Below, one piece after another: positions 1 through 25,892 of a DNA stretch of 64,000 bases. The position numbers were made by a program, and so were the translations under genes. Location of the stretch: positions 2,232,001-2,296,000 of the forward strand of contig CDRNST010000123.1 in the NCBI GenBank assembly GCA_977016875.1, written 5' to 3'. This DNA comes from Pavona decussata. Lineage: Eukaryota. Below the pieces are notes generated by a model. The model saw only the letters and a program-made list of their open reading frames with translations, was not told where the DNA came from and ran no database searches. The first letter of the stretch is position 1. Every line of letters starts with the position of its first letter.

Positions 1-110
1 TTCTTCTGAGAATTGTCGTTTCCTGGATCACCAGTATTCAGTGGTGTTTCAAGATCGAAAAAGACATCTTCATAACGTTCTAAATATTTTGGATTCCTGA
101 ATGATTTCAT
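1..110 (-). CDS. N-terminus of an ORF running off the window, probably the major capsid protein (hexon/PY)
   Basis: ATG at 110 preceded by TAGTATA; open frame MKSFRNPKYLERYEDVFFDLETPLNTGDPGNDNSQK to the window edge. Identity inferred only from its position after penton and the pVI-like gene. Confidence 0.5.
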   Translation of the reverse strand, partial: MKSFRNPKYLERYEDVFFDLETPLNTGDPGNDNSQK

Positions 111-122
111 TATACTATTATA

Positions 123-506
123 TTACACAATTTTCCTCCTTCTGATTTTCCCACCAGATATTATCTGATTCACTCGATCTGCTATTTCCATATCAGAAAG
201 TTGTTTTGTCACCTTTGGCTGAGTGGACATGCTAGTAGGTGACAAAATTGAGGGTTGTTTTTTACTCAATAACTGAACTATCTTATCTCCGGCTTTATTC
301 CCAATATGCTCTCCAGTTTTTGTAACAGCCTTTGTAGCTGCTGTTTTAACTCCTTTTTTAGCTAATTCTTTGGTTGTTTTTCCGAATAATTTTGATGCAA
401 TTGATGTAAATATATTCCCACCAACAATTGATTCATCGTAAATATTCTTTCTAACATAACGACCCATTTCTGGGTCAAATCTTCTTTTGAATTCACTTTG
501 TCTCAT
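123..506 (-). CDS. Small basic virion protein, adenovirus pVI-like / adintovirus membrane-active class
   Basis: Two adenain-type (I/L/M)xGG sites (IVGG, ISGG); Lys-rich amphipathic segment NIFTSIASKLFGKTTKELAKKG; basic C-terminus KIRRRKIV. Confidence 0.65.
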   Translation of the reverse strand: MRQSEFKRRFDPEMGRYVRKNIYDESIVGGNIFTSIASKLFGKTTKELAKKGVKTAATKAVTKTGEHIGNKAGDKIVQLLSKKQPSILSPTSMSTQPKVTKQLSDMEIADRVNQIISGGKIRRRKIV

Positions 507-518
507 TATACAATTTCA

Positions 519-1289
519 TTACACAAAACTTGAACGTAGAATTAAACTCATAAACCAATCTATATTATTTAAATCAATGGGTCTGTTTAATGCATCCGTT
601 ACCGTTATTCTGATTTCGGATATAATATTCTTTGATACTGGACTGAATAAAGCTCTTTTCGGCTCAAAAGTAAATGGAAATGATCTTCTTAAATTATCTG
701 TTGGAATCATTATTAATGTATTTGTTAATACTCCATCGCTAATACTGTCGGTTATAAGATCACAATTTATGTTTATGACATCAATACTATTGGTTATATT
801 TGGAAGTTTGCTGCTATATTCAGTCTGTGTTATTATTTTGGGCTCAAAACCGATCAGATCACCGAATTTTGAATTGGATATATCTAATCTCCATTTATTT
901 CCAAGTTCGACAACGACACGATAACTTGATAAAACAAAATACAGTTTGACAGCTACACCATTAGCTGGTTGATCATCGTTTTGTTTAATGGCTTGTGTAA
1001 TATAATTATTGAGATCATCATAACTGTACATACCATCAACAAATGTGATTGTTTCCCAATTGGCTCCACTATCTTTGGAGTATTTGATTTTATTATTGTT
1101 GTTTTTATTATTGATATTATGCCATGAATAAGTCATTGACACACGATTGACTGCTAGTTCATGTTTCATATTGCTGTCAAGATAAATTGGTGGATTAAAC
1201 TTGATTGAAAAGTCTTCAGGCTGACTCCTACCTATTTTTTGACGATTAACGGATGATATCTTTATTTCTCGTTCTTGCATATATATCAT
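519..1289 (-). CDS. Minor capsid protein (penton, single jelly roll)
   Basis: Polinton penton-like motifs F.I.FNPPIYL, SWHNI, GMYSYDDLN, ININCDLI, ISEIRITVTD..NRPIDLN. ATG overlaps the upstream stop (TAATG). Confidence 0.85.
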   Translation of the reverse strand: MIYMQEREIKISSVNRQKIGRSQPEDFSIKFNPPIYLDSNMKHELAVNRVSMTYSWHNINNKNNNNKIKYSKDSGANWETITFVDGMYSYDDLNNYITQAIKQNDDQPANGVAVKLYFVLSSYRVVVELGNKWRLDISNSKFGDLIGFEPKIITQTEYSSKLPNITNSIDVININCDLITDSISDGVLTNTLIMIPTDNLRRSFPFTFEPKRALFSPVSKNIISEIRITVTDALNRPIDLNNIDWFMSLILRSSFV

Positions 1290-2428
1290 TAGAATACATA
1301 ATTATTCAACAGCTCAATGAGTTGTTTATTGGAAATCGTACCTAGTTGATTCAATTTATGGGCAATCTGTGAAAATTCATTTTTAACGGAGTTATTCCCA
1401 GCTAAAATGGATCCGCCGAGAAGTTCCATTCTGTCAAGTAGGTCATTTATATTATTGAAATAGACAACTCCTGACCCTATTTTTTTGAACTTATTACTGG
1501 TTTTATGGATTGGAATTTCACTCAGTTGGTTTAATTCATTGAAAACCATTTTGGCTATATCACTGTATTTCTTTTTTGAATTGAATCTCTTTGTGAGGAG
1601 ATCAATGGTGTCAAAATCAACCTTCTTATCAAGCACTTTTTGTCCATCTTTTGATGCAATAAGACGTAATTGTCCCATCAATTTGGGGATATCAATCATG
1701 AGACCACCATACTGACCATATTGATTTATCTTATACGCATTCCGCTTTGGTTGTGTATGCAAGCCTTCACCACTGAGGGTTTTGAGACCTTCTGGGATGA
1801 GTTGAATTCTTTTTCTGTATTTTTTAACAGCCTCCATTTTCATGTTTAACATATCGATTTCAGCTTCATTTGTGATTTTACCTTTACCTCTTGATAAAAC
1901 ACCTTTTTGTCTACCAATTTCCTTCATTATTTTCCCAACCTTATTATCATAATCCTTAAAAACAAGCGAACCATCCTTAATACGTTCTAATAGTGAACTA
2001 GGTGGAATTAATTCATATTCCATCATTATCTCAATTTCATCATCATTGAATCCTTTGTCCAGATTTGATTCATATGATGATTTCATCATAGCTGGTTTGT
2101 AACCAATTGGCAGTTTTGTTTCTTGTTGTGGTTGTGGTTGTAGTTGTGGTTGCCCAGGCTGAATTGCTAACATCTCAATGTTCTCCAAACCTGATGTGAT
2201 TGCTTTTTGGTTTTTCTGCAATTGCTTAATCAATTTATCCTGTTTGGCATCAATTGTTTGTTTTGTCTCTTCCTGAGCTTTAATTATTGGTTTGAACGTT
2301 TCTGATAAACCCTGTTGTAAATCTTGTTTATTATGCTTGTATTCCTTCAACGTGTCTCTTACCTCTTTAGTAAGGATTCCAGCCTTAATCTTGGCTTCAG
2401 ATATTTGTTTCAATCGTTGGATATCCAT
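1289..2428 (-). CDS. Conserved Polinton/adintovirus virion-module protein (coiled-coil N-terminus), function uncertain
   Basis: 379-aa intact ORF; C-terminal DLLDRMELLGGSILAGNN..NE motif resembles Polinton core proteins; adenain-type LSGE/G site; TAGTATAATG start. Confidence 0.65.
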   Translation of the reverse strand: MDIQRLKQISEAKIKAGILTKEVRDTLKEYKHNKQDLQQGLSETFKPIIKAQEETKQTIDAKQDKLIKQLQKNQKAITSGLENIEMLAIQPGQPQLQPQPQQETKLPIGYKPAMMKSSYESNLDKGFNDDEIEIMMEYELIPPSSLLERIKDGSLVFKDYDNKVGKIMKEIGRQKGVLSRGKGKITNEAEIDMLNMKMEAVKKYRKRIQLIPEGLKTLSGEGLHTQPKRNAYKINQYGQYGGLMIDIPKLMGQLRLIASKDGQKVLDKKVDFDTIDLLTKRFNSKKKYSDIAKMVFNELNQLSEIPIHKTSNKFKKIGSGVVYFNNINDLLDRMELLGGSILAGNNSVKNEFSQIAHKLNQLGTISNKQLIELLNNYVF

Positions 2429-2546
2429 TATACTATTTGCTTACATAAACTTATCTCAACTTATCTCAACTTATCTCAACTTATCTTTCAGAAATCACAT
2501 ACAAATCCATCATTTTTATTGTCTAATAAAATAGTATAATGGATAT
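2421..2546. promoter_or_regulatory. Bidirectional promoter: 18-bp inverted repeat spanning both start codons plus 4x AACTTATCTC
   Basis: ATATCCATTATACTATTT (2421-2438) is the reverse complement of AAATAGTATAATGGATAT (2529-2546); 10-bp tandem at 2448-2486. Confidence 0.65.
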
Positions 2547-3177
2547 TCCAAACTATGACAATGAAAATGAAAACAATAATTTCAAACGGCTTTATGGATT
2601 CATGCCTAATGATACATTTAGAATGCTTATATGCGGTAATTCTGGTTCGGGTAAAACTAACCTTCTTTATCACATGCTTATGCAGCCATTATTATACTAT
2701 GATCAAATACATCTTTATGCAAAAAATCTAGAACAAGCAAAGTATAAAGATATGATTCAAAAGCTAAATGATATATCAAATAGTGTTGGTTATGATGTGA
2801 TAGTTTATAGCAATGATCAGATAGTTCCAGTTGAGAGTTTAATGGATGATGAATCACAAAAGATTGTCATATTCGATGACTTTATTTGCGATAAAAACCA
2901 AAAACCATTAATCGATTATTTTATAAGAGGTCGGCATAAAAACTGCTCTGTTATTTACCTTAGTCAATCATTTTACAAGACGCCAAAGGACATCAGGTTG
3001 AACTGTTCACATTTCTGTGTCTACGACTTCCCAAGCAATAATGAACAGAGTCTGATATCCCGTGAATTGGGAGTTGATAAGGGAACATATATTAAAGCCA
3101 CCAAAAAACCATATTCTTTTCTCTATGTGGATAGACCTATGAAAGTTGTAAAAAGAAACTTTTACGGAACAGTCTAA
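2539..3177 (+). CDS. A32-like (FtsK/HerA) DNA packaging ATPase
   Basis: Walker A GNSGSGKT, Walker B IVIFDD, RGRH arginine finger, LSQS motif, IRLNC. Confidence 0.95.
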   Translation: MDIPNYDNENENNNFKRLYGFMPNDTFRMLICGNSGSGKTNLLYHMLMQPLLYYDQIHLYAKNLEQAKYKDMIQKLNDISNSVGYDVIVYSNDQIVPVESLMDDESQKIVIFDDFICDKNQKPLIDYFIRGRHKNCSVIYLSQSFYKTPKDIRLNCSHFCVYDFPSNNEQSLISRELGVDKGTYIKATKKPYSFLYVDRPMKVVKRNFYGTV

Positions 3178-3189
3178 TCAATTAGTATA

Positions 3190-5280
3190 ATGGGAATTTT
3201 CAATGATGAAGCAACTTCTACAACAGGTTCTGGATCAATAGGACAACAAGGTCCTCAAGGACCTCCAGGCGTTGGTTTTATACTAACAGATAATGGTGAT
3301 TATGACTTACAAAACAAAAAACTTGTTAATGTTAAACAAGGAGCTGATCCCAATGATGTTGTCACAAAGAGCCAAATACAATTGTTGGATAATGCTCCTG
3401 GTGATGTGCGAGCTAATAAAGCAGTAATTTACAGCAATACTGGCAGTGTTCATACCAACAGCATATATTTACAAGATATACCAGACGGTGCTGGTAGCTC
3501 TAATGATGTTCGATTAATGACTGAGCATCAGTCTTATGAAAACATTCATCTTCATATACCAGATTTGAAAAACTTTGATGGTTATGGTGGACGAGCTAAA
3601 AGCGAAATAATGGTCACATCAACAGAACAACATATCACCGGACGGAAAACATTTTTTGATATTAATGTTTTAAAACCTGATAATGACGATCAAGCAGCGA
3701 ATAAAAAGTACGTTGATGATTCTGTTAAAAAAATACCATCGCCTGATTTATCAGGTTATTTGGAAAAGGACGGATCATCACCAATGACTGGTAACCTTGA
3801 TATGGGTAATAAACAAATCACCAATCTTGGTGCTAATATACAAAATACCTATGATGTTGTCAATTTGGGTTTTTGTGATACTAAATACCAACAAAAAGTT
3901 TCAAATAGCGATCTTGATATGGATCAACATCGGATAAAAGATATGAAACACCCAACTGATGATAATGATGCTGTTACTAAATACTACGTTGATCAGAATT
4001 TTCTTAACCGTCTAAAACCTGATGCATTGGATGGTGATCTAGACATGCGTGGTCATACAGTTAAATTTCTGAAATTATCGAGCGAGCCATCAGCTGCTGC
4101 TCGGGTGGCTGAGCTGAATCTCAAAGCTGATAAAAACTATGTTGACAATCGAGATACCTATGTTATCAATGCTATTTCAACTTCAGTTAATACAGCTTTT
4201 AACACCACCCTGAGAAGAGATGGGACCAATTCAATGACTGCTGATTTAAATTTGGATGATCATAAGTTGATAAATGTTAAAGAGCCAACCGATGATAAAG
4301 ACGGTGTAAATAAAAAGTATTTTGAAGATAAACTTGCTGAATCACATTTGATTAGCAGTCACAAAACAAACGAATTCAAATACCTGTATGACACAGATGA
4401 ATCAGCTTCGGAGTATAATATAAGGGTAGATGGGTTCGAAGAGAACTTCAGAGAATCTGCTCATCAAAATAAAAAAGCTTATTCAATCACAATGATTAAG
4501 GACACTGATGGATCTAATGATTATCGAAGTGGTATCTCATTCAACATTTATCCATTACCCATTGGTACGTTCACAATGATATTCGAATACTATTGGCCTG
4601 AATCCACCAATGTATCATTGTCAACTCAGGGAACAACTGTCTATATTCACAAACAAGTCTATCGAGCATTCGACACGTATGGCAAACTTCTCGTTCAGAT
4701 TAATAACAACAGTAAAACCACACCTGATCGTATAACATTAGTCATCCATGGCAGAGCTGTAGTCCAGAACCCAGAAGGATACTTGGTTATTTATGGAATC
4801 AAAGGATGGAGTGACAGTGTTGATCCAAGGGTTTATGATGGGTTGAAAAATGAGATGTACGCTGATATTAATATGAATAATAATAGGATCGTAAATTTGG
4901 CTGATCCTACAGATGATAACGACGCCGTTACAAAAAAATGGATAAAACAACTATCAAGTGAAATTTATGTAAGTGGTAAAATAAGTGTACGAAATGGATT
5001 TTTTCAAAATGTTACTGGTGATAATTTAAATTTCACAAATGAAGTCACAATAGAAAAAATCCATCTTTATTCACCAACAATAAATACTAATTCATCCATT
5101 ACTTTCAATTTAGCAGGAGCAACAAATTTCGTTTCACGATTTAATTTCAGATTTATTACCACTGTTAATATTAACCGAAAATTTGATTCAATAAATAGTA
5201 TTCAGCTCCGTCTTTCAAGTGGACTTGGTATTGGTGATGTAAAATTCACAATAAAATATTCCAGTCTTAATATACATTAA
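3190..5280 (+). CDS. Putative trimeric virion fibre/spike protein
   Basis: Short Gly-X-Y stretch (GQQGPQGPPG); about 7 copies of G[DN]LDM..I.NL..P.D..DA..K.YVD (phage-fibre/YadA-neck-like); beta-rich C-terminal domain. Confidence 0.7.
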   Translation: MGIFNDEATSTTGSGSIGQQGPQGPPGVGFILTDNGDYDLQNKKLVNVKQGADPNDVVTKSQIQLLDNAPGDVRANKAVIYSNTGSVHTNSIYLQDIPDGAGSSNDVRLMTEHQSYENIHLHIPDLKNFDGYGGRAKSEIMVTSTEQHITGRKTFFDINVLKPDNDDQAANKKYVDDSVKKIPSPDLSGYLEKDGSSPMTGNLDMGNKQITNLGANIQNTYDVVNLGFCDTKYQQKVSNSDLDMDQHRIKDMKHPTDDNDAVTKYYVDQNFLNRLKPDALDGDLDMRGHTVKFLKLSSEPSAAARVAELNLKADKNYVDNRDTYVINAISTSVNTAFNTTLRRDGTNSMTADLNLDDHKLINVKEPTDDKDGVNKKYFEDKLAESHLISSHKTNEFKYLYDTDESASEYNIRVDGFEENFRESAHQNKKAYSITMIKDTDGSNDYRSGISFNIYPLPIGTFTMIFEYYWPESTNVSLSTQGTTVYIHKQVYRAFDTYGKLLVQINNNSKTTPDRITLVIHGRAVVQNPEGYLVIYGIKGWSDSVDPRVYDGLKNEMYADINMNNNRIVNLADPTDDNDAVTKKWIKQLSSEIYVSGKISVRNGFFQNVTGDNLNFTNEVTIEKIHLYSPTINTNSSITFNLAGATNFVSRFNFRFITTVNINRKFDSINSIQLRLSSGLGIGDVKFTIKYSSLNIH

Positions 5281-5290
5281 TATTATAATA

Positions 5291-5665
5291 ATGCCATACT
5301 TTGAAGATGAAAACGGAAACCATATATTGGATGAAAATGGAGATAAGATTGAATATACAGTCATACATGAAATGCAGCAAGATATCATATGGAAAGAACC
5401 AATTCACGTCAATGATGACGGTCACCTTGACACAGAAGACCGTCATCTGATTATCAAAGATGGAACACAACCAAATCATGCAATATCTCTGAGTCAACTC
5501 CAGAGCCACACAGAGGATACTATCAAACCACTGATTGACAATAGTATAAGACAATCTTTGGTGCAATTGGATTCTGACATCAAAGGACTATTGGAGAATA
5601 TGATGCGTACTAAAGTAAAACCGTTAATAATCAGCACGATTAATGAAGCTCTTAAAAAATCATAA
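5291..5665 (+). CDS. Small fibre-related protein (one degenerate neck repeat plus a helical tail)
   Basis: GHLDTEDRHLIIKDGTQPNHAISLSQL resembles the fibre repeat; begins 11 nt after the fibre stop. Confidence 0.55.
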   Translation: MPYFEDENGNHILDENGDKIEYTVIHEMQQDIIWKEPIHVNDDGHLDTEDRHLIIKDGTQPNHAISLSQLQSHTEDTIKPLIDNSIRQSLVQLDSDIKGLLENMMRTKVKPLIISTINEALKKS

Positions 5666-5695
5666 AATTTTGTGTAACAATAATTATAAAAGACT

Positions 5696-6166
5696 ATGAT
5701 TGATGTAACAGAGTTCAACCATGTCAGCAACACATTATCATCTGACCAAATCGATGAATTGAAATCTTATTACAAAACCTATCACAAAAAAATGTGGATT
5801 TACAAAAAAGCTTATAAATCCTATAGAAAATGGAAATTAATCGGTAACATCAGTTCTGCAATTATTGCTGCTGGTGGTATATCCAGTAGTATACCCACTT
5901 CAGGCATATCTCTTGTTGCGGCTACTGCTGTTTCACTTTTCATTCAAATATATTTGAAGCATAAGAATCTCGATATTAAAACATACCAATGTCATTACGC
6001 CTTTCTAAGATATGGGCACTTGTTAATATCCATAAAAGAAATCCTTAGAAGTGGCGAATCTGATGATGATCTCCTGATAAAACTACAACATGCTGATAAT
6101 TATATTTTAGACAACACACCGATTGTTGATAAACAAGCAAGGATGTATGATAAGTTATTTCACTGA
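5696..6166 (+). CDS. Small viral membrane protein with a hydrophobic hairpin (SLATT-like topology)
   Basis: Basic helix followed by LIGNISSAIIAAGGISSSIPTSGISLVAATAVSLFIQIYL. Confidence 0.6.
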   Translation: MIDVTEFNHVSNTLSSDQIDELKSYYKTYHKKMWIYKKAYKSYRKWKLIGNISSAIIAAGGISSSIPTSGISLVAATAVSLFIQIYLKHKNLDIKTYQCHYAFLRYGHLLISIKEILRSGESDDDLLIKLQHADNYILDNTPIVDKQARMYDKLFH

Positions 6167-6708
6167 CCTATTTCACCACCAATCAAATCCAATACACTAT
6201 CCCAATATTTTTTATAACTAGCCAATGTTCGGTCACTCTTAATACAAACAAGCGGACTGTGTTCTAATCCCATGGCGCTTAAAATTTGTTCTAATAAAAA
6301 TTTTATACTGATAATACGTTTCCTTTTCCCATTAATATGGGGAAGAATTTTATTTATTTCGACGAAAATACGATGTATTTTTACCCTCTGTTGATAATTA
6401 ACACATATTATCGATGCTGCCAATAAATCATCGATGATATTTTCAAGATGATATTTTCGATTGTAAACGCTCTTTTTACGAAAGCGATAAAGATTCTCTC
6501 GGAAATTAACATATTCGTTTACTACTTTATAGCCAGCAACTTGCCCGCAATTTTTACAAACTGAATAACCTCTATCAAGAATTATATGGGCATTAATACA
6601 ACATTGTTCGCGTTCGTTCGACTTACGATTTTCAAACTGCTCACGACAGAAAGGACAAGACTCTCCAAAATCCCTGAAACCTTCATGTATTTCTGAATCA
6701 CAATTCAT
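6160..6708 (-). CDS. VLTF3-like (poxvirus A2-like) late transcription factor with Zn ribbons
   Basis: Likely ATG at 6708 (MNCDSE). CPFC, CC..CKNCG; YNRKYHL, RKRIISIKFLL and IKSDRTL...YW align with the NCLDV VLTF3 motifs Y.R..HF, RKNFL.Y.YVL and LKS..KL....W. Confidence 0.8.
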   Translation of the reverse strand: MNCDSEIHEGFRDFGESCPFCREQFENRKSNEREQCCINAHIILDRGYSVCKNCGQVAGYKVVNEYVNFRENLYRFRKKSVYNRKYHLENIIDDLLAASIICVNYQQRVKIHRIFVEINKILPHINGKRKRIISIKFLLEQILSAMGLEHSPLVCIKSDRTLASYKKYWDSVLDLIGGEIGQ

Positions 6709-6897
6709 TCTACTATACAATATATTATTGTACACAATATTGTTTAATACATGTAAGAAAAAAAATAAATGAAAAAAGAAGCCTTTGTTATGCAAAATGC
6801 AAAACCGTTTAAATATTAAACATTTTCAAACTCAAACTCAAACTCATATTTTATCAGAAAAAATAACCACGATAACATTTTCATGGCTGACATATTT

Positions 6898-7025
6898 CAC
6901 AGATTTTTACACAAACTGTGGAAGTTACACAGAATTTTATACATGATGTGAAAGTTACACAGAATTTTATACAAGCTGTAAAAGTTACACAGAATTTTAT
7001 ACAAGCTGTGGAAAATTCTGTGTAA
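6898..7025. repeat. 30-bp tandem repeat (about 4 units) capped by an inverted half-unit
   Basis: CACAGAATTTTATACAAGCTGTRRAAGTTA-like units at 6898, 6928, 6958, 6988; AAAATTCTGTGTAA at 7012-7025 is the inverse of 6985-6998. Confidence 0.9.
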
Positions 7026-7098
7026 TCATTTCATTCGCTAGAAACTCATACGACTGTCTCATGACCTTGAACACAATAGACTGAATTTAGACGCAAGC

Positions 7099-7141
7099 GG
7101 GAAAGTCCCACTGCATTACATCATTTCCGAGAAAGTGAAAC
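7099..7141. promoter_or_regulatory. Candidate immune/stress-responsive enhancer (kB, ATF/CEBP, GAS, IRF-E)
   Basis: GGGAAAGTCCC 7099-7109; ATTACATCA (=TGATGTAAT) 7115-7123; TTCCGAGAA 7125-7133; GAAAGTGAAAC 7131-7141. Confidence 0.6.
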
Positions 7142-7239
7142 AGTATTTGGATAATGGCGTGAATGCGTTTCTTACGCGTAAGAAAAAAAGTAACGTCGAA
7201 GAGACAAGCTATTGACAGTAAAGAATAAATTTTTCATTT

Positions 7240-7269
7240 AAAAATCCTTAATTAATCTTAAGGATTTTT
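7240..7269 (-). terminator. Perfect 12-bp-stem hairpin just after the stop of the 193-aa ORF
   Basis: AAAAATCCTTAA-ttaatc-TTAAGGATTTTT, 15 nt downstream of the stop at 7285. Confidence 0.4.
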
Positions 7270-7284
7270 CCATAAAACATTATT

Positions 7285-7866
7285 TCAAATACCTAAATTT
7301 GATAAAACATCATAACGACTATCTTCTTCATCACTAATTGGAACATAATAGTTTCTTCTAAAATGCTTTGCCTCTTTTCTATTAAAATGTATTTTTTTAA
7401 ATTTATCATACGATATTGTATTTACTGGGAAAAAATATTTGTTTAATTTTGTGACAAAACTTTTACCATCATTAACACAATGATGGCAAACTGGAAAATA
7501 ATCATTTTTGTAATTTTTAAATATCCTATATATTCCATTATCTCTATTTTCAATATATTTATCTTTTTTACATTCAACTAATTGTATTTTTTTACAATTC
7601 ACACATTCAAACATTTTTTCAATCAATTCCCGATTATATAAACATTTCAAAATAAAGTAATAATCAATCATCATTTCTTTATGATGCACATATTTTTTAA
7701 TTTTTAAAAACTTTTTATAAGATTCCATGCTTTCAGTAATATCTTCCCCTGATATCTCTTTCACATCTTCAATAAAATTTTTTTTAACATCATTTTTACA
7801 TCTAATAAAAGAATTCAAACGATTAGTCAAATGGTTTTTTAAAATAAATATATTATATTCACTCAT
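7285..7866 (-). CDS. Hypothetical Lys-rich viral protein with two CxxC pairs (putative Zn binding)
   Basis: 193-aa ORF in extremely AT-rich DNA; CVNC and CHHC; TATA-like TATATAA just upstream. Confidence 0.6.
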   Translation of the reverse strand: MSEYNIFILKNHLTNRLNSFIRCKNDVKKNFIEDVKEISGEDITESMESYKKFLKIKKYVHHKEMMIDYYFILKCLYNRELIEKMFECVNCKKIQLVECKKDKYIENRDNGIYRIFKNYKNDYFPVCHHCVNDGKSFVTKLNKYFFPVNTISYDKFKKIHFNRKEAKHFRRNYYVPISDEEDSRYDVLSNLGI

Positions 7867-8008
7867 TCAATATATTATATATAAGCGGTTTCTCTTTAAG
7901 CCTTTTTGGATTTGACCTTGGGAAATTATTTGCTTTAAAATGCAATACTTTTGCTATTTGCAGGTTTGTGGTGTCCATGTTTTCGCTTATAAATAAGTCT
8001 AAATTTCA

Positions 8009-8121
8009 GCGCAATTTCTGAGTGCAATTTTTTTTGTCGCAATTTTTTGTCGCAATTTCTTGGCGCAATTTTTTAGCTCAATTTCGGAAAATGCGCCTAT
8101 ACCATCATATCCTATACTACT
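8009..8121. repeat. Polinton terminal region (part of the TIR) with periodic GCAATTT motifs
   Basis: GCAATTT at 8011, 8024, 8039, 8052, 8065 and TCAATTT at 8078; terminus TACTACT at 8115-8121. Confidence 0.75.
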
Positions 8122-8795
8122 GAAATTTAAATATCTTATTTATGTAGACTAGTTGCTTTGTCGGTGTAAGTTAAGTACAAATTACCACATTGTAACATAC
8201 CCATTTACCAGTTACTTAAGCGAGAAAGGTTTTGTTGCTGTCATTCACGATAGTCTTTCACTGCTAGTCACAAGAACGTTTGAAACTTATCCTTGAACCT
8301 AACCGGGTCTGTGGTGTATTAGAATAGTTAAACATAAATGTAAAAAAAACTTTAATTGCAGTTACTTTAATCATAGCGAAAATGTACTTTTAGTTTCTAG
8401 GTACTCTACTCAAATAATTGCAAAAGAAATAAGAAAGTTCCAAATTCAAAATAGCGAGTTAAGGTTAGAAATCCCAAGTGGCAGAAATCGAAGTAACCAA
8501 ACCAGTGTGCTATTTACAAGTGTCGCAGGAGAATTCAACTTAGTCTTCATACCCTGAAACAAACTCCAGATACTGGCCAGAGCGGACTCTGAGCCTTGAA
8601 TCTCCGGATTTGGAGGCGATTTAACCATCCACACATAAAATACACACACTTTATTTCAATTCAGACTACTGTTGCACAATAACATCCCGATGTCTTCGTA
8701 AAAAATAAAAATAAATAAAAAATAAAAAAAAACGCAACAACAAAAACATCACCACAATTGCAACTAAGCTGTACTTAGTCCATGTTTTTTTTTAG

Positions 8796-11700
8796 AGAGA
8801 GATCCTTGCCTTTCCAGTCCATGTCAAAATGGCGGAAGCTGCATTGACGATGAAAAACAAGAAACCGGTTACCGCTGTCGCTGTAGACCAGGATACAGTG
8901 GGCACAAATGTGAAGGTAAAGAATATCATCATTACTAAATTGTTGATTCCTTTGCTCGAAAAGTTGCAGAGCTTGGAAATCAGCTTTCTGAGTTCTTTCA
9001 AAATTTAATGGTTTGAGGGAGGCATGTTAGCAGTATTCTTGTCCATTAGTTTCCATTAATTCTGCAGTTGAATGATTTTTACCAATTAAAGATTAACATT
9101 AAGCGGCCTGGACATACGTCGCCTTTCAAGAAATAATAAGACCCAACTTTTATCAGGGAGAAAAACGCTCTCGCGTCAGTGACTGCATAAAATTCACACT
9201 CCATCCATATCCTTTCTTAACCATAGTTAAAGCTGTTATAAAATTCACATTTGCTTGTATTTCGTACAGGAAGACCCAACACGCGGGGAACATCAGGTAA
9301 TGTTACTTTTCAAGTTTGATTGTCTCAATTTAACACAAAAAGTGAAATTTGCGAAACCCAAGAATAGTAGTATAGAATAGAAGAATAGTAGTATCGAATA
9401 GTAGTGTATACTGACTCATCTCCGAATATACCCAGCCACGCGAATCCTTAGGAATGGCCTCATCCTTACGGAAAATTCTTGGCTTGCCCTTTTGTAGAAA
9501 TGACGGATCATTTCGATCCCCTGGAATTACAGCTGTGATAAAATGGCATCTCCAAAAATAGTACCCTATAGCTACGAATACAACAGTCTCTCTTCTGTAT
9601 TTACATGTTACAAAAATGTCTGATCACTTCGAATTGTACGTACTAGTGCTTGCTATTTCCCAAAATGGTAGTCTTAATATACTTCCAAGAATGTTAGATT
9701 ATTTTCAGGAATAGAAGAGCATTCGAAAAGTTGATGAATTGCAACTGCAAGTGTTACGAGATAATCAACTCAGCCCTCTGTTTTTCCTTTCTGTATGGCT
9801 CAATCGTCCTCTCTATGTTTCGTTGTTTCATAATTTGAAACCTACCATAGAGCAAAATGGGCGTGTTTTAAAGCCAGCTTTAATGTCACCCAAGTCTGCC
9901 CATTGAGCAACGCAGATCATTTGTCCATAAAGAAAACGTTGCTTTTCTATTGTGTGTAGCTGGATTCAGAGTAGAGATTGTGGAGTACATCAACATATTT
10001 CGAAGACTCCATGGCGCAGGCCCTCTCATCTTATCCACTGGCATTTCTTTGGCCGCCCAGAACTGGGCAAACACGCTGGTCTCGCGAGGAACGGCCTCCA
10101 TTGATCCAAACACAAGCTACGGGACGAATGTCTTCACCAGAGTTGGTCTTCAAACAGGATTGGCTCAAGCAGCTGTAGTGACGTGGTATACATCTGTGAA
10201 ACATTATGATTGGGCAAAACACGAGTCAAAAGTCCTTGCGTCGCCATTTGTTCACCTTATTTGGCTTTCAAGTAACTTTGTAGGCGTTGGTCTGGCCAGG
10301 TCACGGACTGCGAAGTTTTATGTTGTGGTGTACTTTGATCCCATGCCGGGAAATAAAGAACCGTTTCTTAAGGACAACGTCCTACCATACACAGGTGTTT
10401 AGCCGAGATATTTACAAAATTATCTTTAACACATTTAAAATAATCACAGCTGTTAACTGTTTTAAACATTGAGAATAATTACATAACAAAAACCTTACAC
10501 TCACTGGCGCAACATTATGAAACATACGGCTAATGAATAATACAATTGTTATGTGCATCGTTCGTGATTTTAAAAGTTCTTATGATATATTGATTTGTCA
10601 TTTAATTTTTTTGCTCTTAAATTAGTTTCAATTTGAATTTGGTACTACAGATTTATTTTTCTACGCGTTTCTGTTTTGTTTTCTTATTTTACTGACATTA
10701 TTATATCTTTCTGCCTGTGGCAGGAACAAACCTTGTTACTGACTCATACTTTAATTTTGTTTTCAGACGTATTTATTCTAATGCAAGGTGGTAAGTACAT
10801 GTCTCATCACCCTAAATAATAATCCTACGTCAAACGCCCCCTACAGCAGTGATAACATTTTTCGGTTTATAGTAAATTCTAAAGGTTGCCATCCTCGGTA
10901 AACCCCCCCCCCCCCCCCCACCCTACCTCCCAAGATAGACTTAAAAGAAATTAAGCTAGTGGCTCTTGTCTGGATGAGACGAAGGAGTAAATAGCCGTTT
11001 TTATACTAAAGACCGTTCTATGAAGAACTTGTAATTGGGCAAACATTTGTGGTATGTCTGGTTATGCTTCTCGTACTCCATCTAGCATAAAGAAGGGAAA
11101 ATGGCGGATTGTGTATAGACGAACTATTTCGGGTAGTGCATTGTTCAAGAAGATCCGGCTTATCCCAGTCTTTATACTAGATGAACTACGAGACACATAA
11201 CCAGACGCACTACAGATGTTTCACCAAGTTCGAATGATTACACTTCTCTAGTATGAAAACGGCCTCAATCGTAGTCTGGAAAAAAAAGAGAAGACAGTGA
11301 TCTCCGTCATCGAATTTTCAATGATATAAACTGTGCGTTTGTTTTAAAACATTCCCTTTGTTGTCACTTTGATTTCACCGCTCTTGCTGCACATAATGTG
11401 CACGTTTTATACACGAGTATTGCCAATTTGCTGATCCTGCAAGCCTATGACCTTGTCGTGGTGGAGTAGCTTCATTTGCTCTCTGAGTTCACCGGGGCCA
11501 TACGGGCAGGGGAATTTTTTCTCTCGATGCTCAACTACGCAGACTTGATCTAGTGGGAAGGTGGCAACATGGAAACAATAGCCACCTAGTCCTCCAGGTT
11601 TGGGGTTGGGCGGTGGGTAAACTACCTATCAATCTAAAACTAATTAGCTACTGCGACGAGATTCGCTCTATAAGAAATCCCGCGCTTGGGGAACTATAAA

Positions 11701-14700
11701 CCGTACGTATCCACCATTTGATGGCACATTAAGAAATACTTCCGATCTCGACTTATCACCGTTGCTAAATTTGTCACTTTTGCCTTCATCAAGAATTGGG
11801 GAATATTTGGCTTTCATCTGTAAAGGTCTTGACTCAATTTATTTCTCACGATCCCTTGGTTTTTACCTAACAGTGTCGTGCAACCCGGGCTATAAGAAGT
11901 TTGAAGGCACCTGTTACAAATATCACGTCGACAAGCAAACCTGGGAAGCAGCATTGTTTCTGAGTGCGAAGGAAAACGCAACATTGGTCTCCTTTCACAA
12001 ATCACAGGAGGAAGCATTTGTCCAGACACTGATGCCACCAGGATATACAGGTTTGATCTGGACAGGTCTTAACGACCGGATCACGGAGGGAACCTATACA
12101 TGGTCAGACGGCACTACCGTTGAATACTCGAGCTGGAAGGCAAACGAACCAACAGGAGAGAAGGAAGATTGTGTCGGTGTAGAAGTGATCAGTTATGGCA
12201 CTATGTCGGATGTCCCATGTGCTGAGCCTCATTACTATGTGTCCAGGCAACCTCTTGAAGGTGAGAGGTTAAGTGATTACCATCTTTCACTAGGTTACCA
12301 ACGTCACCGTAAGGTTACGTGATTTAATGGAGGGGAAAGCTACTGTGCAAATAGTTATATATACGGCATATCAGTCTCGGTCGGAACTTGCGCAGATAAT
12401 TTTTTAAACAATTAAGCTACCAAGTGAAAACTTAAGTTCTTATAAAAATCAAGGTACATAAAAGTAAATGCCCCTTTCGTAAATGGAGTGGCAAGAGAGA
12501 GGATTTGCTGGGTGTTCAACGTTTATGTACTTTTATTCCAGTCCTGAAAGATCAAACGCGTTAATGGGTCTAATACACCATCGCTCACCATCTTGGATGA
12601 TCAGTGGTAATGTTTGAAAGTTTAGCTGGTTCATCCCATCTCCTCTACTCACGGCTTTGCACTTAGCAAAGACCGTAAGCACAGCAGAAAACCAACTCTG
12701 GTGAAATTTAAGTAACAGCAGTGCCTCTGAAGGTCTACTAAATTTTGTTTTACTTGAACATTTTAGGTCTGATAACATATCGCACAAAGCTCCAACTTCC
12801 TTCCCTACCGTGGACAGACGAGTATGGCCAGTCAACGTCACTGTTGTTCTTGCAACTAAAAAAAAAGATAGAAACACTGGTACGAATGAAGTTGTCTCTT
12901 ACACTCAATAATACCTTCAAAAACTCATTAATAATTCATATGCCCATTGACCTATCAAATGGTTGATAATACATCACGTGCAGTGACTTTATATCGATAA
13001 ACCTCCTCGTTATTAGCATGCGGTGTTTTATCAGCTGATAAAACACTCCCATAAGTATGCGGTGTTTTTCTCGTATGCTAATTTTCAACGTTTACAAAAG
13101 CATCCGTCGTCATGTTCTTATCTTGTTTTTTGATTTCATCTTGTAAAACAATAACTGAGGAGACCTAACGAGAACGAGTCACTTTGGTCCAATACGAGCC
13201 TTTTGATAATCTTAGCCAAAATTTTAAGAACATATTATGGACAAAACAAAGGTTGATATCGTCTTTCCAATACATTACACAAGTTATCAATAAAGATTAA
13301 CGATTTTGACATGTCAATGAGCTATGTTCTGGGATTTGGAGGTTTACTGACCAAAAGCAAAGGGAAAGTAAAATCACTGAAAGTTAGCGGGGAGTTCGAG
13401 TTAGCTGATAGTAAAGGACTGAAAAAAATGGTGTCAAATCCAAGGGAAATTGTTCGAGTCAGTGGGGAGTTCGAATTAACCGAGTTCGAATAGTTTCGCA
13501 CACTCTGATTTGACAAATCAAACTCCGGATAATATTTGCTATTCACCACACGGGGGCTGGGTATCCACTGGTTGGTAGATACTAAAATAATTACCCATTA
13601 ATATCCACCTCCAATTTGATGATTGTTAATTTTTATTACAATTGTGCTGTAATTATTCTTTGACATATTTTTTTGCTTTCTTTTTAAAGCTACTGGATAT
13701 TTTTGAAAATGACAAGACATTTGTGTCTGGATATGTTGAAGAATTCAGGTGATATTTCAAAACTTTTTCCCTTATACTTTTACACAACCCTACTAGTTGT
13801 AAACGAAAAGTATCGTATTTGTAGGAAGCTTAAGAAATTTCAAAGTAATTGACATATTGAACCTCACTTCCAGGGGAACTGTATTGGATTGCAAGTCCTG
13901 GCCTCTTTCACTAAGTTGCCGAACCCTTGAAAAAAAAGGGCCATTTCTTCGATTTTCACGGGATTATTTTCTAACAGGAAAAGTACTAGAACGCAACTTT
14001 TCACTTTTCCTCAACAATTTTTCACACATGCATCAAACGTAGAAAAATAAACACGCTCTTTCTTTCACTATTCTCTGACTATAATATTTTTCGATCTGAT
14101 CTGAGAAAATTTGGCGAAAACGCAATGTCGTGAACTTAGGGGTTGGAACTTTAAATCAAATGGAATTGCCTGTTTGCTCCAGCTATACCCAAAGGTGCAC
14201 CCTTGCATCTTTTACAAGTCTATTTTGCACCTTTAGGGAAAAGCCGTCGGTAACAGTTTCACTGATTTTAAAGTTCGGTCCTAATCTTGCTCCGGATCCC
14301 ACAAAACCAATTCAAGACCATTTGAGGAAAAACCTTGGACGCCTCCCAGCACCAGTTAACCAAAAGACCCTGATACAATCTGTCAGAATTGTTCCTCCGG
14401 GTAGGTGTTCTCCTCTTTTGTCTACATGCTACTACTTATTAATTGTAATTGAAATAGATTTACTCACCAACTTATTAGCAATCCCCATTACCACTGTATT
14501 CTATCGACGCCTTCCTCTAATTCTCAAGTGTTTTTCAATGATAACTTTGACTCGGTTTCAGGCTTTCACAGCTGTCTGCATAGCGGCGCTTTTAACTATC
14601 CATTTACCCAGCTTTTTATCTTGGCAATGAACGCAATTCAGACGACCTGAAAATTGTTAATAAACATTAGGGAAAGCAGACGTTTCGATGCCATCCTGAC

Positions 14701-15032
14701 TTCATTATTTTTATATAAAATTAACCATTCAAGTGGAATTATTTAAACTATGAACGCCCCAGGGGTTAAATATCCGCCAAACTGGTGCTCTACCGTGCAA
14801 GCTAACTTCATGAATGTCGTAGCATATTCATACTCGTTTCGCGCGTAATTCGAAGAGCACAAAGTAAAGTTGGATAATAAAGAAAATTCTTAAATTCTTT
14901 CCAGGGATTGCACCGGCTGTTTTAGGAACCTGCACCTCCAGCTGCCCCACAACCTGCTTAGTTACTTGCAATCCATTTTGCTGTAACTCCAAGATACCGG
15001 CCACCAGTAGCGTTCAGTATTCAGGCATGTAA
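8796..15032 (+). pseudogene. NOWA-like copy A (3' part): EGF-CAP-CTLD-SEA-CRD, truncated; probable pseudogene or short paralogue
   Basis: Exons 8796-8915 (EGF), 9270-9296, 9960-10394 (CAP), 10767-10790, 11874-12260 (CTLD), 12767-12879, 13690-13748, 14237-14400 (SEA), 14905-15032 ([18 protein letters not shown], then TAA where copy B has CAA). GT-AG with compatible phases. The 5' exons should lie beyond the Polinton. Confidence 0.75.
10993..11265. mobile_element. Old foldback MITE shared by copies A and B (also about 33852-34130)
   Basis: GCCGTTTTTATACTA ... TAGTATGAAAACGGC with long imperfect inverted arms. Confidence 0.6.
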
Positions 15033-15310
15033 CATGGAGTTATAGCCCAGGCAGCTCCTAAAGGACTTGTCATGCCCAATTTACGTTCTCAAGTTAGCAT
15101 GTTTCCTGTTCCAGATGATGAATGCTGTGTATGAAACCGACATGGTAAGAGGAAGAGGAGGCCTAACCGTATTAGTGCTGTGAAAGACGTGACAGAAAAC
15201 TTTGTAAAGCTTCACCGTCTTATTGACAAATTGAAAAACAGTCAAAGAATAACGCTAGTGATTCACAGAATGACAGTAAGACAAATGGAGCAGGAGAAAA
15301 AGTAGAAAAC

Positions 15311-18300
15311 TATTATGCTTTTGTATTCCCGAATACAAATAAACACATTCAAGATGGCTGTACAAACTACAACTCAGGTTTATTCACTAAAGTGAGGCAA
15401 TACATAAAAGCGCGAGCACGTGCTCTTTATAAAGACTGGGAACTAGTATTTCACAACATCTCTCTTTTTTTTAATAAACATGCGTCCAAATATATATAGA
15501 CGAGTCTAAACAATATGAGCATCAAAATCAATCTTAAACTTAATGTTCATGACTTGCATTAAAACACTGTTCACTTAATATAGACACAAAGTATGGTAAC
15601 AACTTGTGAAATGTTCTCTCTAATCGGTAACATAGTCTTTAAACCAAACAGGAGGTCGGATAATTCGACCCTTAAGCCTGGTTTACACGTAAGACGCAAG
15701 CATAAGCATAAGCACAAGAAACCTACGTGTAAACCGGTGCGACGCAAGCATAGGCGCCTTGTGCTTGCGCTTGTGCTTATGCTTGCGTCGTCCCGGTTTA
15801 CACGTACGACGCAACGACCCAAGCATAAGCACAAGCACAAGAGAATGGAACGATTTCCATTCTCTTGGGCTTGTGCTTATGCTTACGTCGTTGCGTCGAA
15901 CGTGTAAACCGGGACGACGCAAGCATAAGCACAAGCGCAAGGAAAGGAAACTGAAAAACAGTGACAAGTTGTCAGCGTACAATTTTGTTGCTCATGCGTT
16001 GCCATTTTCCGCCATGTTGGAATCAAATCTCGCCCCAAAAGGCAGCCCGGCTGCGTGATTGCGCCAAATTTGTTTGCTTCTGCGCTTGCGTATGTCACGT
16101 TATGCTTATGCTTATCGCACTTGTAAACATCCTTGTGCTTGTGCTTGTGCTTCTTCTTATGCTTGCGTCGTACGTGTAAACCAGGCTTGAGAACTGACTC
16201 TCTCATAGCTTACTGGATCATGGACTGGACTTGTGGTGTTGGTTCAGTTCTGAATCTTCTAGTCGCTGCTGCTGATTGGTTGCTTCAGTTGTCTTAATCA
16301 GATCACGTCTGTTTCTTCTGTAACTGGTTCCTTCTGAGTTACCAACATACGATCTTGGCGCATCGGTTACCCTGGTAACCACAGCAGGTGTCCATGTCTT
16401 CTGTCCTGGCTTTCTGACTCGCACAGTGTGTCCTGTGTTCAGGGTTTCAGAACTTTTGCATTCCGGTTGTAGTGCTGCTGCTGTATTTCTGCACGACGAC
16501 TGAGACCGTTCTTAATATTTCCGGTTGGATACTGTGGCTCTAGTAATGCAGGCGTGGAGGTAGTTGGGTTCTGGTTCGACGCCCCATAACCATCTGTGCT
16601 GGCGATAGGCCAATTTCCTCGATGGGAGTGTTTCGGTAGGCTAACAAACCAAGCTGAAAAACCTTTCCTTCAACTTTTGCTTTCTTCAGAATGTTCGCTG
16701 TTTGAACTGCTCGTTCTGCAAGACCATTACTATGCGGGTATCTGGGCGATGATGTAATATGCTTGAACCCATATTGCTTTGCGAACTCGGCAAACTCATG
16801 GCTACTGAACTCGGGCCCATTGTCACTGTCTATCATCTCAGGGATTCCATATCTTGCGAACTGAGGTTTAATGTGGTCTTGCTTTTACTATTGGCCAAGT
16901 TGGACACCTCAAAGAACTTTGAGTAGTAGTCAACCATAACCACATATTCTTGTTTGTCAACTTCAAGCAAATCCTCTGCAATTGTTTGCCATGGCCTTTC
17001 AGGTAATTCATGGCTCTTAAGTGGTTCTTTTGCTTGGGAATTTCTGTACATGTTACAGGTATCGCACTTGCATGCCATGTCTGCTATCTGTTGGTTCATT
17101 CCTGGCCAATACAAGAGATCTCTGGCTCTACGTTTGCACTTTTCGATGCCCAAATGGCTGCTGTGAACACACTGGTCGGCCCAGTAATAGACACGGCCCA
17201 AGTTCATAGGATAATGGGCTTTTCGACATCATAATACTAGAGTGTTGCACCACTTGTCAGCTTTTCTTTAATGGCTTGGAATCCTTTCTCTTGTCTTTCG
17301 GACCAATGCTTTTCCACTTCTTTGTGCAGTAGCTTCCTTACGGTGGCTGAGTTAGGTCTGCTAGGTTAGGTGTGAATATACTCATGTAGTTCACCATTCT
17401 AAGGAATCTTAAGAGTGCAGGCTTATCTGCTGGTGATGGCATTCCTTCCACTGCATGCACCTTTCTAGGATCTGGTTTTAATCCTTGACTGTTTTAACAC
17501 ATGCTCTAAGCGATGGTTGTGCTCTGCTTCGCTTCTGCCCCAGACATGAATATCATCAGCGATTGTCTTCACTCCACTCAGGTCCTCAAAGGCTTGAGTC
17601 ATTCTCTTTGGAAAGATCTCAGGGGCTACGTTTTAAATGGTGTTTCAAATGTTAACAGCTCAGAACTTTTCTCATCGAGCTTACTGTGCCAAAACCAAGA
17701 TGTGGCATCTGAAACACTAAATACTTTGGCATCACTTTATTCAGCTGCAACTTCGTCCACATTTTTCATAGGATAGTGTTCTCTCTGGAAAGCTTTATTT
17801 AAATCCCTAGGACCTGAACACAGTCACACTTTACCATTTGCTTTCTCCACAACCACTAAAGAACTAACCCATTCAGTTGGCTCCTCGGCTTTACGAATAA
17901 CACAAAGTTTTTCCATACGTTCAAGTTCTTCCTTGACTTTCTCTCTCTGCGTGAAAGGTATTTTGCGAGGTGGGTGTACAACGGGACTCACGGTAGGATC
18001 AATCTGAATCTGATAGGTACCCTCCAAACATCCAATACCATCAAACACATCTTCATACTTCATAAGGATTTCATTGACTTCTTGATTACATTTAGTACCA
18101 CTAGACAGGTTTTCATCCTCTTGAGTATGAACTGAACTGACTCTCTGGACCAGATTTAAATCATGACAGGTTTGAAGACCAATAACTGGAGTGGCTGGAT
18201 GCTCAATTATTTGAAATTCAACAGGGTGGGAGTTTCCACTAAGTTTCACCTGGAGTGTAGCTTTACCCATCGCAGGTATCTTGTGGCCAGTAAAAGACAC

Positions 18301-19449: not shown

Positions 19450-20296
19450 GTTATCGAAAACATCGAGACAAATCTGAACAAGCTTGGAGTTGGTTTCAAG
19501 AAAAAGAATCAGCCCAAAAGCCACAACCATTTCAACAAGTTGCACGAAGCAACTGAAAATACAAATGAACATTTCAGCGTCACCATAAATCAGGCTGAAA
19601 ACTCAAAACTATCGCCTTTTAAAAAGAGGGAAGGCGGTGTATATGACCAGAAAAAAAATATATACTCATGAAATGATTGACGGTGACCAAGAACCCAGCA
19701 ACTTAGATGAGTCCGCCATTAATCCGAAAAACCATTCTAGCATTACAGAGATTATCAGCGAAGATCATCTAGAAGAACACGGGAAAAAAAGTCGAGTCAA
19801 TAGGACAGACTCAGTGGGCCAACTTGAGAATGACAGTTTAGGAAATGACGAGGACGATATTCCACATAGTCAAGAGATTAGTATGCAGGAGGACGACGAA
19901 GAAGCTGTGGGTGACGCTAGTCATTCCACTAACGAACCAACGGATAGCAATACTGAACCTGGAGATACCAGCTCGGAACCTGAAAATGACATTTCTGAAA
20001 CTGACAATGAAGACGAGAAGGGCGACAAACCTGTGGGTGACGCAAGCCATTCCATTAAAGAACCAGCAGATAGCAAAACTGAGCCTGGAGATACCAGTTC
20101 TGAACCTGAAGATGACATTTCTGAAACTGGCTATGAAGACGAGAAGGACGACGAAAATGAACCACTTGAGGATGATTTCAATTTGGAAGATTCTACAAAA
20201 GATCCCTCCGACGAGCTATTGGATGAAAGAGGAATTGTCGACGTTGGTAAATACGGGAAAAAAAGGAACATGGTTCTTAGAAAGAACTCGTCTTAA
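19450..20296 (+). pseudogene. Acidic low-complexity coding remnant, continuous with 15114-15310 across the Gypsy insertion
   Basis: Reading frame ...GEKVEN|VIENIETNL continues across the TSD; frameshift near 19655; Asp/Glu-rich ORF with a 42-aa (126-bp) duplication at about 19904-20150. Confidence 0.6.
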
Positions 20297-24714: not shown

Positions 24715-25064
24715 GCGAGATACTCGGGTTTCCTATGGGTGGTGCCTACTAATACAGGAATATTTTTGCGCGGTTTAAAACTATACGGAGAGAGCAGAAC
24801 TTGCCAAATACCTTTGGTATCTCAAAAGAAAATCTGGGGTAACCATGCATTTTTCAGAGAAAATTAAGCTTCGATTTAGGAAAAAATCCCATACATTGCT
24901 TTATATTTTGGCGCTTTTTAGAGATATTGTTGCTTAATTATCTCTGAAAAATGCGTGGTTACCCCCAATTTTCTTTTTGGATTCCAATAGGCCTTGCTAA
25001 GATCTGCTTTTCCCGCATAGTCATAAACCGCACAAAAATACTTTGGTATTAGTAGGCACCGTCC
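24672..25064. mobile_element. Non-autonomous DNA transposon with TTAA TSD (Kolobok-like)
   Basis: TTAA-GGACGGTGCCTACTA ... TAGTAGGCACCGTCC-TTAA. Confidence 0.85.
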
Positions 25065-25892
25065 TTAAACGTAGTCAAATCGACAAGGGTTAAGTACTAT
25101 GAGTCCAGAACGCGTAGTGGTCTACGTGAAGGACTATCGATGCGTAGTGGTGTATGCGTTGGATTATCGATCGCACTTTCGATCGCAAGATCAGCAGGTC
25201 AGCGGTTAGAAACCAGGTTAGATTCAGATTCTTTCATTTATGCACTGTTTCAATAGTTTACTACAAAAGGAAATTATGATACATCACAAAAGTAACATAA
25301 AGACAACATTAAATTACATAAATCATCAAAGGTAAAATGTGCCCAGTGACCAAAGGAGCTTAGTCTTTCGAGTTGGTCACTGCCACGTCCAGCTAACTGG
25401 CGTATAACGTGCAACTAACTAAGTACCACAAAACAAAAGACAAGAACATTTAAAGAGTAATATCGACCTTTTGAAGCACAGCAAACAAGAAGATAAGTAG
25501 CACAAGTAGATCTGCACTCTCGCATCACGGACCTTTACTCATGGTTTACTCCACATTCCCTCTCGCTACCAAGGTTTATAAATGGGTGCCGCCCGCGAAG
25601 AACCTTTGACAGTCATCCCACCCAGGGAGGAGTAGAAGCACTTTAAGCTCCAGCCAAGTTGGTCTTGCGTCACCGTAGTCACCTTATCCCTTAGCACAAT
25701 TGCGGATGCTGCGCATAAGATAGGGCAGTACAACCAACTATTCGACCACCTGATTCTATAAATATAAAAGCCTTTGTATATTTGAAATAGCGGTTGTGGT
25801 TAACTGAAAAATTTTGCAAAATCTATGCAACAGTGCGCATGCTGTTGAGGTGGAAGTTAGAAAAATATTTTTTTATTTTCTTTCAGAATGCA

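Follow-up and report, generated by a model that had tools for sequence, protein, structure and literature searches.

A conserved non-coding block with a kB-type site upstream of VLTF3 in an integrated Polinton-like element: a candidate control module for host factors

The window analysed here is a stretch of 64,000 nucleotides of Pavona decussata DNA (contig CDRNST010000123.1, positions 2,232,001 to 2,296,000 of the forward strand), and at its left end it holds part of an AT-rich, virus-like, integrated Polinton-like element that encodes a VLTF3-like transcription factor. Upstream of the VLTF3 gene lies a conserved non-coding block of about 190 bp, and we propose with moderate confidence that this block is a cis-regulatory module in a terminal control region of the element, through which host factors would drive VLTF3 and whose best-supported input would be an NF-kB-type 11-mer.

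The conserved block and its motif cluster

The gene had been called VLTF3-like in an earlier note made from the letters of this DNA, and the assignment holds, since the intact open reading frame (ORF) passes the Pfam threshold for PF04947 (Pox_VLTF3) with 26.7 bits against a gathering cut-off of 25 (E 5e-6, profile positions 58-162 of 168). Fifty relatives of the protein were found, most of them with PF04947; among solved structures none was related to it, the best hit being an unrelated protein (E 0.08). An exact look-up of the window's own VLTF3 protein gave no record, and copies of the element were obtained via its relatives: look-ups of eleven of the 50 yielded 18 loci (L001 to L018) from three ENA assemblies, all of them integrated into host contigs that are 47 kb to 3.1 Mb long. 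The features on which the argument turns are listed below in coordinates of the window.

1 to 8121: visible portion, truncated at the window start, of the integrated AT-rich element, which is virus-like and Polinton-like; right end near 8121
6160 to 6708, minus strand: VLTF3-like gene, intact ORF of 182 amino acids (aa), PF04947
6706 to 6715, minus strand: start motif TAGTAGAATG, one mismatch from TAGTATAATG, including the ATG
6709 to 6834, minus strand: about 125 bp immediately upstream of VLTF3, kept in both subfamilies, probable core promoter
7046 to 7233: conserved non-coding block (outer limits about 7035 to 7235), 38% G+C, CpG observed/expected 1.46
7099 to 7109, minus strand: kB-type 11-mer GGGAAAGTCCC; the reverse complement of 7100 to 7109 is GGGACTTTCC, on the VLTF3 strand
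7115 to 7123, minus strand: C/EBP-ATF-type motif TGATGTAAT, in the form defined by the earlier note
7125 to 7133: gamma-activated sequence (GAS)-type motif TTCCGAGAA, consensus in PMC1618399
7131 to 7141, plus strand: interferon-stimulated response element (ISRE)/IRF-type core GAAAGTGAAAC, sharing 3 bases with the GAS-type motif, consensus in PMC1618399
7168 to 7185: perfect 18-bp palindrome within the longest invariant run of the block (7168-7188), present twice in L009 and L010

The block was present upstream of VLTF3 in every copy with a VLTF3 identity of at least 76% (L001 to L010, which together with the window make 8 distinct sequences), and block identity in these loci was 90-98%. Both of its flanks are non-homologous between two subfamilies. 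On the upstream side, the subfamily of the window carries ORF193, in the same orientation, and then a hairpin, and the other subfamily carries an unrelated ORF of 156 aa, divergently oriented, that starts about 45 bp away from the block. On the downstream side the short tandem repeats differ, the unit being 30 bp long in the window and L004, 13 bp in L001 and L003 and 12 bp in L005, and some copies carry extra sequence before the conserved proximal region of about 125 bp; therefore, the distance from the block to the ATG varies from about 170 to about 1000 bp among copies. The position of the cluster upstream of VLTF3 holds in all 8 sequences, but in one subfamily the block also lies close to the divergent 156-aa ORF and would therefore not be wired to VLTF3 alone. 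In L009 (3563-3603) and L010 (2216-2256), a second, partial piece of the block bearing the palindrome was seen about 30 bp downstream of the block.

Within the block, all four motifs that had been claimed for a stretch of 43 bp were located at 7099-7141, at a measured 391-433 bp from the ATG at 6708, in agreement with the earlier figure of about 400 bp. The AT-rich surroundings were also borne out, with 24-26% G+C in the flanking non-coding DNA as compared with 38% in the block and 44% in the cluster, and the block is richer than its flanks in both G+C and CpG, a promoter-like composition. The kB, GAS and ISRE consensus forms were matched to published ones; the C/EBP-ATF form used is the earlier note's own, and a literature search found no paper giving that form. 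Taken singly, no motif class is enriched in the 64-kb window (kB, 4 found vs 3.0 expected; GAS, 27 vs 28.4; C/EBP-ATF response element (CARE), 14 vs 16.4), save for a mild excess of the IRF core (14 vs 7.0). Taken together, the shuffled-background check favoured the cluster, as none of 400 first-order Markov shuffles of the window placed the four classes inside 50 bp. When a vocabulary of 15 stress and immune classes was used to allow for post hoc choice, 5 of 400 shuffles reached four classes, a rough control in which most class patterns (AP-1, cyclic AMP response element, heat-shock, CCAAT and others) are provisional. The cluster is unlikely to have arisen by chance within one window, but occasional clusters of this kind are to be expected by anyone reading a whole genome. 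It is the conservation evidence that carries the weight.

Against L006, L008 and L009, the block was 93.6% identical, vs 84-89% for the VLTF3 coding sequence and 81-84% for its third codon positions, so that with respect to these divergent copies it shows about one third as many differences as third codon positions. Among the 8 sequences, 35 of the 188 block columns vary. Five of the variable columns fall within the 43-bp cluster, three at degenerate motif positions, one in a spacer and one at a constrained base (in L004). The ISRE/IRF-type core is invariant in 8 of 8 copies, the sole change in the C/EBP-ATF-type motif (L008) and the sole change in the GAS-type motif (L003 and L005) are both at degenerate positions, and the cluster has no insertions or deletions in the 8 copies, which is expected anyway at about 93% identity. 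The comparison of motifs with their surroundings among family copies gave a divided answer: motif-constrained columns vary less than the rest of the block (1 of 27 vs 34 of 161; Fisher one-sided p=0.02, with a post hoc motif definition and copies that are related and not independent, which lessens what the test can lend to our proposal), but other runs of the block are at least as invariant. Taken together, the sequence evidence says that the block is under constraint.

Among the four motifs, the kB-type site is the one that stands out. The exact 10-mer GGGACTTTCC occurs 13 times in 235.6 kb of collected sequence, in all cases upstream of VLTF3 and on the gene strand, and the kB consensus gave 16 hits in 15.4 kb upstream of VLTF3 vs 2 in 128.7 kb elsewhere. 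Six of the 8 distinct copies keep the 10-mer exactly, one carries a variant that keeps the consensus and one has a single constrained base changed; the variant, GGGAATTTCC in L009 and L010, is altered at a degenerate position. A more distant family, L013 to L016, comes from the third assembly and has VLTF3 and ATPase proteins 49% and 53% identical to those of the window. No alignable block was found in these four loci, and they nonetheless have a 13-mer identical to the kB-type one of the window, on the same strand and at -175 to -186 from VLTF3, followed by a CCAAT-type box (as is the block in L001 and L003); a further one or two matches to the kB consensus lie within 0.9 kb. The recurrence of the kB 13-mer is strong evidence when judged as a test of a motif that had been specified beforehand. 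The kB site of the earlier note fared best of the four, its 10-mer being found only upstream of VLTF3 and its 13-mer being identical in a family with 49% VLTF3 identity. Its generality among VLTF3-bearing families was not upheld, since three of them (L011/L012, L017 and L018) lack an upstream kB site, two of these three belonging to the same host assembly. That the entire promoter is homologous in the window's family and in L013 to L016 was considered and rejected, as the best local alignment comprises the 13-mer only.

Proposed mechanism and competing explanations

In the mechanism that we propose, the module of about 190 bp at 7046-7233 would act as an upstream enhancer or promoter used by the host RNA polymerase II apparatus, with the 43-bp cluster as its core. 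Host sequence-specific factors would dock on the module and raise the transcription of VLTF3 and, in one subfamily, perhaps also that of the divergent 156-aa ORF. The best-supported input would be the 11-mer at 7099-7109, with GGG at either end, occupied by an NF-kB-type dimer, and the ISRE-type, GAS-type and C/EBP-ATF-type motifs would be further possible inputs. VLTF3 would in turn work through the TAGTATAATG-type motifs at the starts of the morphogenesis genes and perhaps through the motif variant at its own gene. The binding of host factors, activation by that binding, the immune or stress signal and the reading of the start motif by VLTF3 are steps that we infer from the sequence.

The downstream half of this scheme concerns the gene starts. 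Motifs of the TAGTATAATG type directly adjoin the start codons of the fibre, ATPase, 377/379-aa, 141-aa and 425-aa genes in three families, which agrees with the earlier claim of such motifs at virion genes; the integrase and phospholipase-like genes have no start motif of this type. That VLTF3 acts on these motifs is suggested by its family name only. The VLTF3 gene has a start-motif variant of its own and a conserved proximal region of about 125 bp, so that it probably has its own core promoter, to which the block would be an upstream input; moreover, since its start is a one-mismatch variant of the motif, VLTF3 may respond to its own product. We also observed that the start motif of morphogenesis genes is often bipartite in three families, with a TGTnTAA-like element about 8-10 bases before the TAGTATAATG-type motif (window 2426-2541, 3183-3192 and 108-117; also gene starts in L001, L014 and L018), and that this combination is absent at the integrase and phospholipase-like genes.

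A more specific reading, which we advance only tentatively, is that the block is a sensor module coupling host NF-kB signalling, and perhaps IRF, STAT and ATF signalling, to VLTF3, in such a way that immune or stress firing would start the late programme. Such an immune-induction switch is plausible but unproven, and the scenarios of escape and of defence attached to immune or stress induction are pure inference.

Several observations weigh against the proposed role of the block. Judged blindly by local alignment, the kB-type 13-mer is only modestly unusual, its score being reached in 15 of 500 shuffles. Neither the module nor a kB site is present upstream of VLTF3 in L011/L012 (68% identity), nor in L017 and L018 (42-43% identity, same host assembly), and the distance from the block to the ATG is not fixed. 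Other segments of the block that have no four-pathway reading (7168-7188, 7197-7210 and 7220-7233) are equally or more invariant, and the conservation of the ISRE-, GAS- and C/EBP-ATF-type motifs is inseparable from that of the whole block, only the kB-type motif recurring outside it. Block identity (91-98%) is decoupled from coding identity (83-99%), and therefore recombination could explain part of the apparent conservation; in L003 and L004, for instance, the VLTF3 coding sequences are 99% identical and the blocks 93%, which indicates different histories and recombination between copies. Finally, we assume that the host has NF-kB, IRF and STAT. These points bear also on the four-site unit of the earlier note, which is real, non-random and conserved but covers only 43 bp of a block of about 190 bp that is conserved throughout; with the palindrome at least as invariant as the motifs, the notion of a four-site enhanceosome is too narrow.

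It is unlikely, in our view, that the block is a general or tissue-specific enhancer (constitutive, developmental or cell-type-bound, as in germ line or stem cells) and not an immune or stress switch. On this account the immune flavour would stem from the motif names known to the reader, and germ-line expression would suit an inherited element. It would accommodate the conservation of the whole 190 bp, including the palindrome and the end runs that have no immune reading, as well as the CCAAT-type box and the AP-1-like heptamer that accompany the kB-type site in L013 to L016, and NF-kB is also developmental in sea anemones. In a study of coral polintoviruses, their genes were detected both under heat stress and in its absence, and the grouping followed the colony, not the treatment (PMC11131425), which would also fit. 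However, four inducible-pathway motif classes are rarely found together even with the 15-class vocabulary, and only the kB-type site has been retained across distant families. The chances are lower for the block being a set of sites for proteins of the element itself, such as an origin, a packaging signal or an operator for ORF193 or VLTF3, with an incidental likeness to host sites. The location of the block within about 1 kb of the element's end is in keeping with such a function, and so are the copy-specific 30-bp, 13-bp and 12-bp repeats around it, the 13-bp repeat at the terminus, the perfect 18-bp palindrome that forms its most invariant part and is duplicated in L009/L010, and the three to seven tandem 12-mers just upstream of the kB-type site in L013 to L016. 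Nevertheless, the block stays while its neighbour gene (ORF193 or the 156-aa ORF) swaps between subfamilies, the kB-type 11-mer fits the host-factor consensus at all constrained bases, as does its common variant, and a single copy of the block per element was seen in the roughly 12 kb of L001 that could be read.

We find it improbable that the block is functionless, owing its similarity to hitch-hiking or recent recombinational spread, and that its motifs are a chance find from a large vocabulary. The decoupling of block and coding identities, as between L003 and L004, would be expected in that case, the 13-mer shared with the distant family has a p of only about 0.03 as a blind alignment, and three families lack the site. 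Against it, the block has been kept while both flanks were replaced differently, it shows only about a third of the third-codon-position differences to divergent copies, its substitutions avoid constrained motif bases, the exact 10-mer is confined to this location and to a single strand, and the four classes came together in none of the 400 shuffles. Lastly, it is very improbable that the block encodes a small RNA, a short peptide or an exon. Runs of T, terminal in the block on the plus strand and central on the minus strand, could be read in that sense, but a structured or small RNA was rejected on folding z-scores of -0.59 and -0.38 for the two strands, with no Rfam match above noise and no tRNA match, and a short ORF, peptide or exon was rejected on the stops in six frames, a longest open stretch of 57 codons and the lack of 3-base periodicity (14/11/10). 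Two further identities for the block were discarded. It is not 3' untranslated sequence belonging to the upstream gene, since the neighbour gene in the other subfamily is unrelated and faces away from the block, and it is not a dispersed host repeat, no further copy of it being present in the window or in the flanks of the 18 loci.

The element and the surrounding host DNA

The visible element (window 1 to about 8121) has 32% G+C, and its right end is placed by the alignment to copies, which ceases at 8121-8126; this is the one element end contained in the window or in any of the loci obtained. Compared with the copy L001 on another contig, the element is colinear gene by gene, with a single unbroken match for each visible gene, and the visible genes are counted as free of breaks because every match to L001 is uninterrupted. 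An A32-type packaging ATPase is encoded at 2539-3177 (Pfam PF04665, E 4e-16), and 2562 relatives of this ATPase were found on large contigs. Outside the window, the colinear L001 contains a parvovirus-type phospholipase-A2-like domain (19586-20041; PF08398, E 9e-11) adjoining an rve integrase (from 20137 onward; PF00665, E 2e-11) with a weak chromodomain hit. Neither a protein-primed family B DNA polymerase nor a maturation protease was seen in the roughly 12 kb that could be read (window 1-8121 and L001 8667-20549); without the protein-primed polymerase, the element is called Polinton-like and not a proven Polinton. The 425-aa and 253/256-aa ORFs, candidates for capsid and penton, had no Pfam or PHROG match, and the 425-aa ORF is the probable capsid gene. 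A fibre-like gene at 3190-5280 has a collagen-like start and a segment resembling a phage T7 tail fibre (Pfam E 3e-8); its length ranges from 666 to 911 aa among copies (L004, L009 and L014 compared), which makes it the most variable gene of the element. Further features lie between VLTF3 and the element's end:

6898 to 7010: tandem repeat of a 30-bp unit (3.8 copies), confined to the window and L004
7240 to 7269: terminator-like hairpin with 12-bp stems and a 6-nt loop, just downstream of ORF193
7285 to 7866, minus strand: ORF193, cysteine-rich, no family match
8009 to 8085: 13-bp tandem repeat beside the element's end

ORF193 matched no Pfam or PHROG family, and the idea that it is a second VLTF3 or a VLTF3 paralogue was rejected, as it has no similarity to VLTF3. 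In L003 (about 9591-9651) the 6-nt loop of the hairpin is reverse-complemented relative to the window, L001 and L004, which is a palindrome flip, as by template switching. The 12-mer CCAAGGTCAAAT occurs once in the window near the element's end (7910-7921, minus strand) and in 3-7 tandem copies at -250 to -470 from VLTF3 in L013 to L016, directly upstream of the kB-type site; it may be a repeated terminal or regulatory unit common to both families. ORFs of LINE (long interspersed nuclear element) type encoding reverse transcriptase/endonuclease were found near the VLTF3 end of L013, L015, L016, L003, L009 and L010, in the upstream flanks and at distances of a few hundred bases to a few kb, and the VLTF3 end of the element, or its insertion sites, may attract retrotransposons.

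The rest of the window contains C-type lectin, VWA and laminin-G-type exons (Pfam), a domain content that marks the host as a metazoan; an Rfam search aimed at the host gave a single tRNA-like hit. A host segment of about 7 kb, which holds a C-type lectin exon and begins exactly at the element's end (8120), is duplicated, 8120-15117 matching 29846-39909 at 80-94% identity. Three to five tandem 1023-bp units with a strong negative GC skew occupy 39820-43761, and a 986-aa ORF without a Pfam match spans them. Foldback-type inverted repeats are present in host DNA at 15671-16191 and 24734-25067, one pair having 87-nt arms at 95% identity with a 4-nt gap, nested in 48-nt arms, and the second pair having 153-nt arms; these are probably small non-autonomous transposons.

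Relation to known systems

To our knowledge, no control region has been described for the Polinton-like elements of animals, and a literature search found no paper linking Polintons to kB sites. For the question of how these abundant elements stay silent and what wakes them, a short, recognisable and conserved module upstream of the element's own transcription factor gives a concrete handle that can be compared across copies and species.

The polintoviruses of stony corals are similar in being integrated elements of animals with VLTF3 in a subgroup. In the part available to us, the study of these polintoviruses describes them as integrated, with a subgroup carrying VLTF3 and with transcribed hallmark genes (PMC11131425); in that same part the word "promoter" has 0 occurrences and no host-factor motifs are described. 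The promoters of virophages and Polinton-like viruses that are read by a co-infecting giant virus resemble the gene starts of the present element, in that a short motif abuts the ATGs of morphogenesis genes and leaves almost no room for a host-type promoter before them. An alga in which a giant virus awakens integrated Polinton-like viruses is described in a recent preprint (bioRxiv 10.1101/2025.10.09.676808). In those systems, however, the switch is the transcription machinery of the helper, whereas here it would be a host-type input upstream of the element's own factor gene. If the block were indeed a sensor module, it would parallel, in animals, the induction of prophages or the awakening of virophages.

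The likeness to the interferon-beta enhanceosome that had been noted earlier is a loose one. Both have ATF-, IRF- and kB-type motifs packed without gaps in about 50 bp, with the kB-type motif nearest the gene. Nevertheless, here there is one IRF-type core and not several, a GAS-type motif is added, the ATF-type motif lies between the IRF-type and the kB-type motifs and not at the distal end, and the cluster is 170-1000 bp from the start codon and not promoter-proximal. Accordingly, the packing of motif classes stands, and their order, the single IRF-type core and the extra GAS-type motif depart from the model.

The closest parallel is architectural. Retroviral long terminal repeats and the major immediate-early enhancers of herpesviruses are NF-kB-responsive and drive the first regulatory gene. 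The element described here shares with these viral enhancers a kB site together with motifs for inducible factors, located upstream of its own regulator and kept among variants, and it would share their logic, by which a latent genome listens to the activation signals of its host. It differs in being an integrated Polinton-like double-stranded DNA element of an invertebrate-grade animal genome with a VLTF3-type gene, and the likeness concerns architecture only. Among invertebrate DNA viruses, the white spot syndrome virus of shrimp is reported to use the host NF-kB pathway for its immediate-early gene ie1 (PMC3171479). In addition, the DNA sites preferred by NF-kB proteins are very similar in sponges, sea anemones and unicellular relatives, and the proteins of basal animals share their preferences with those of vertebrates (PMC13042239). 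If the NF-kB reading of the block is true, the strategy of retroviruses, herpesviruses and the shrimp virus would extend to ancient integrated DNA viruses and to early-branching animals.

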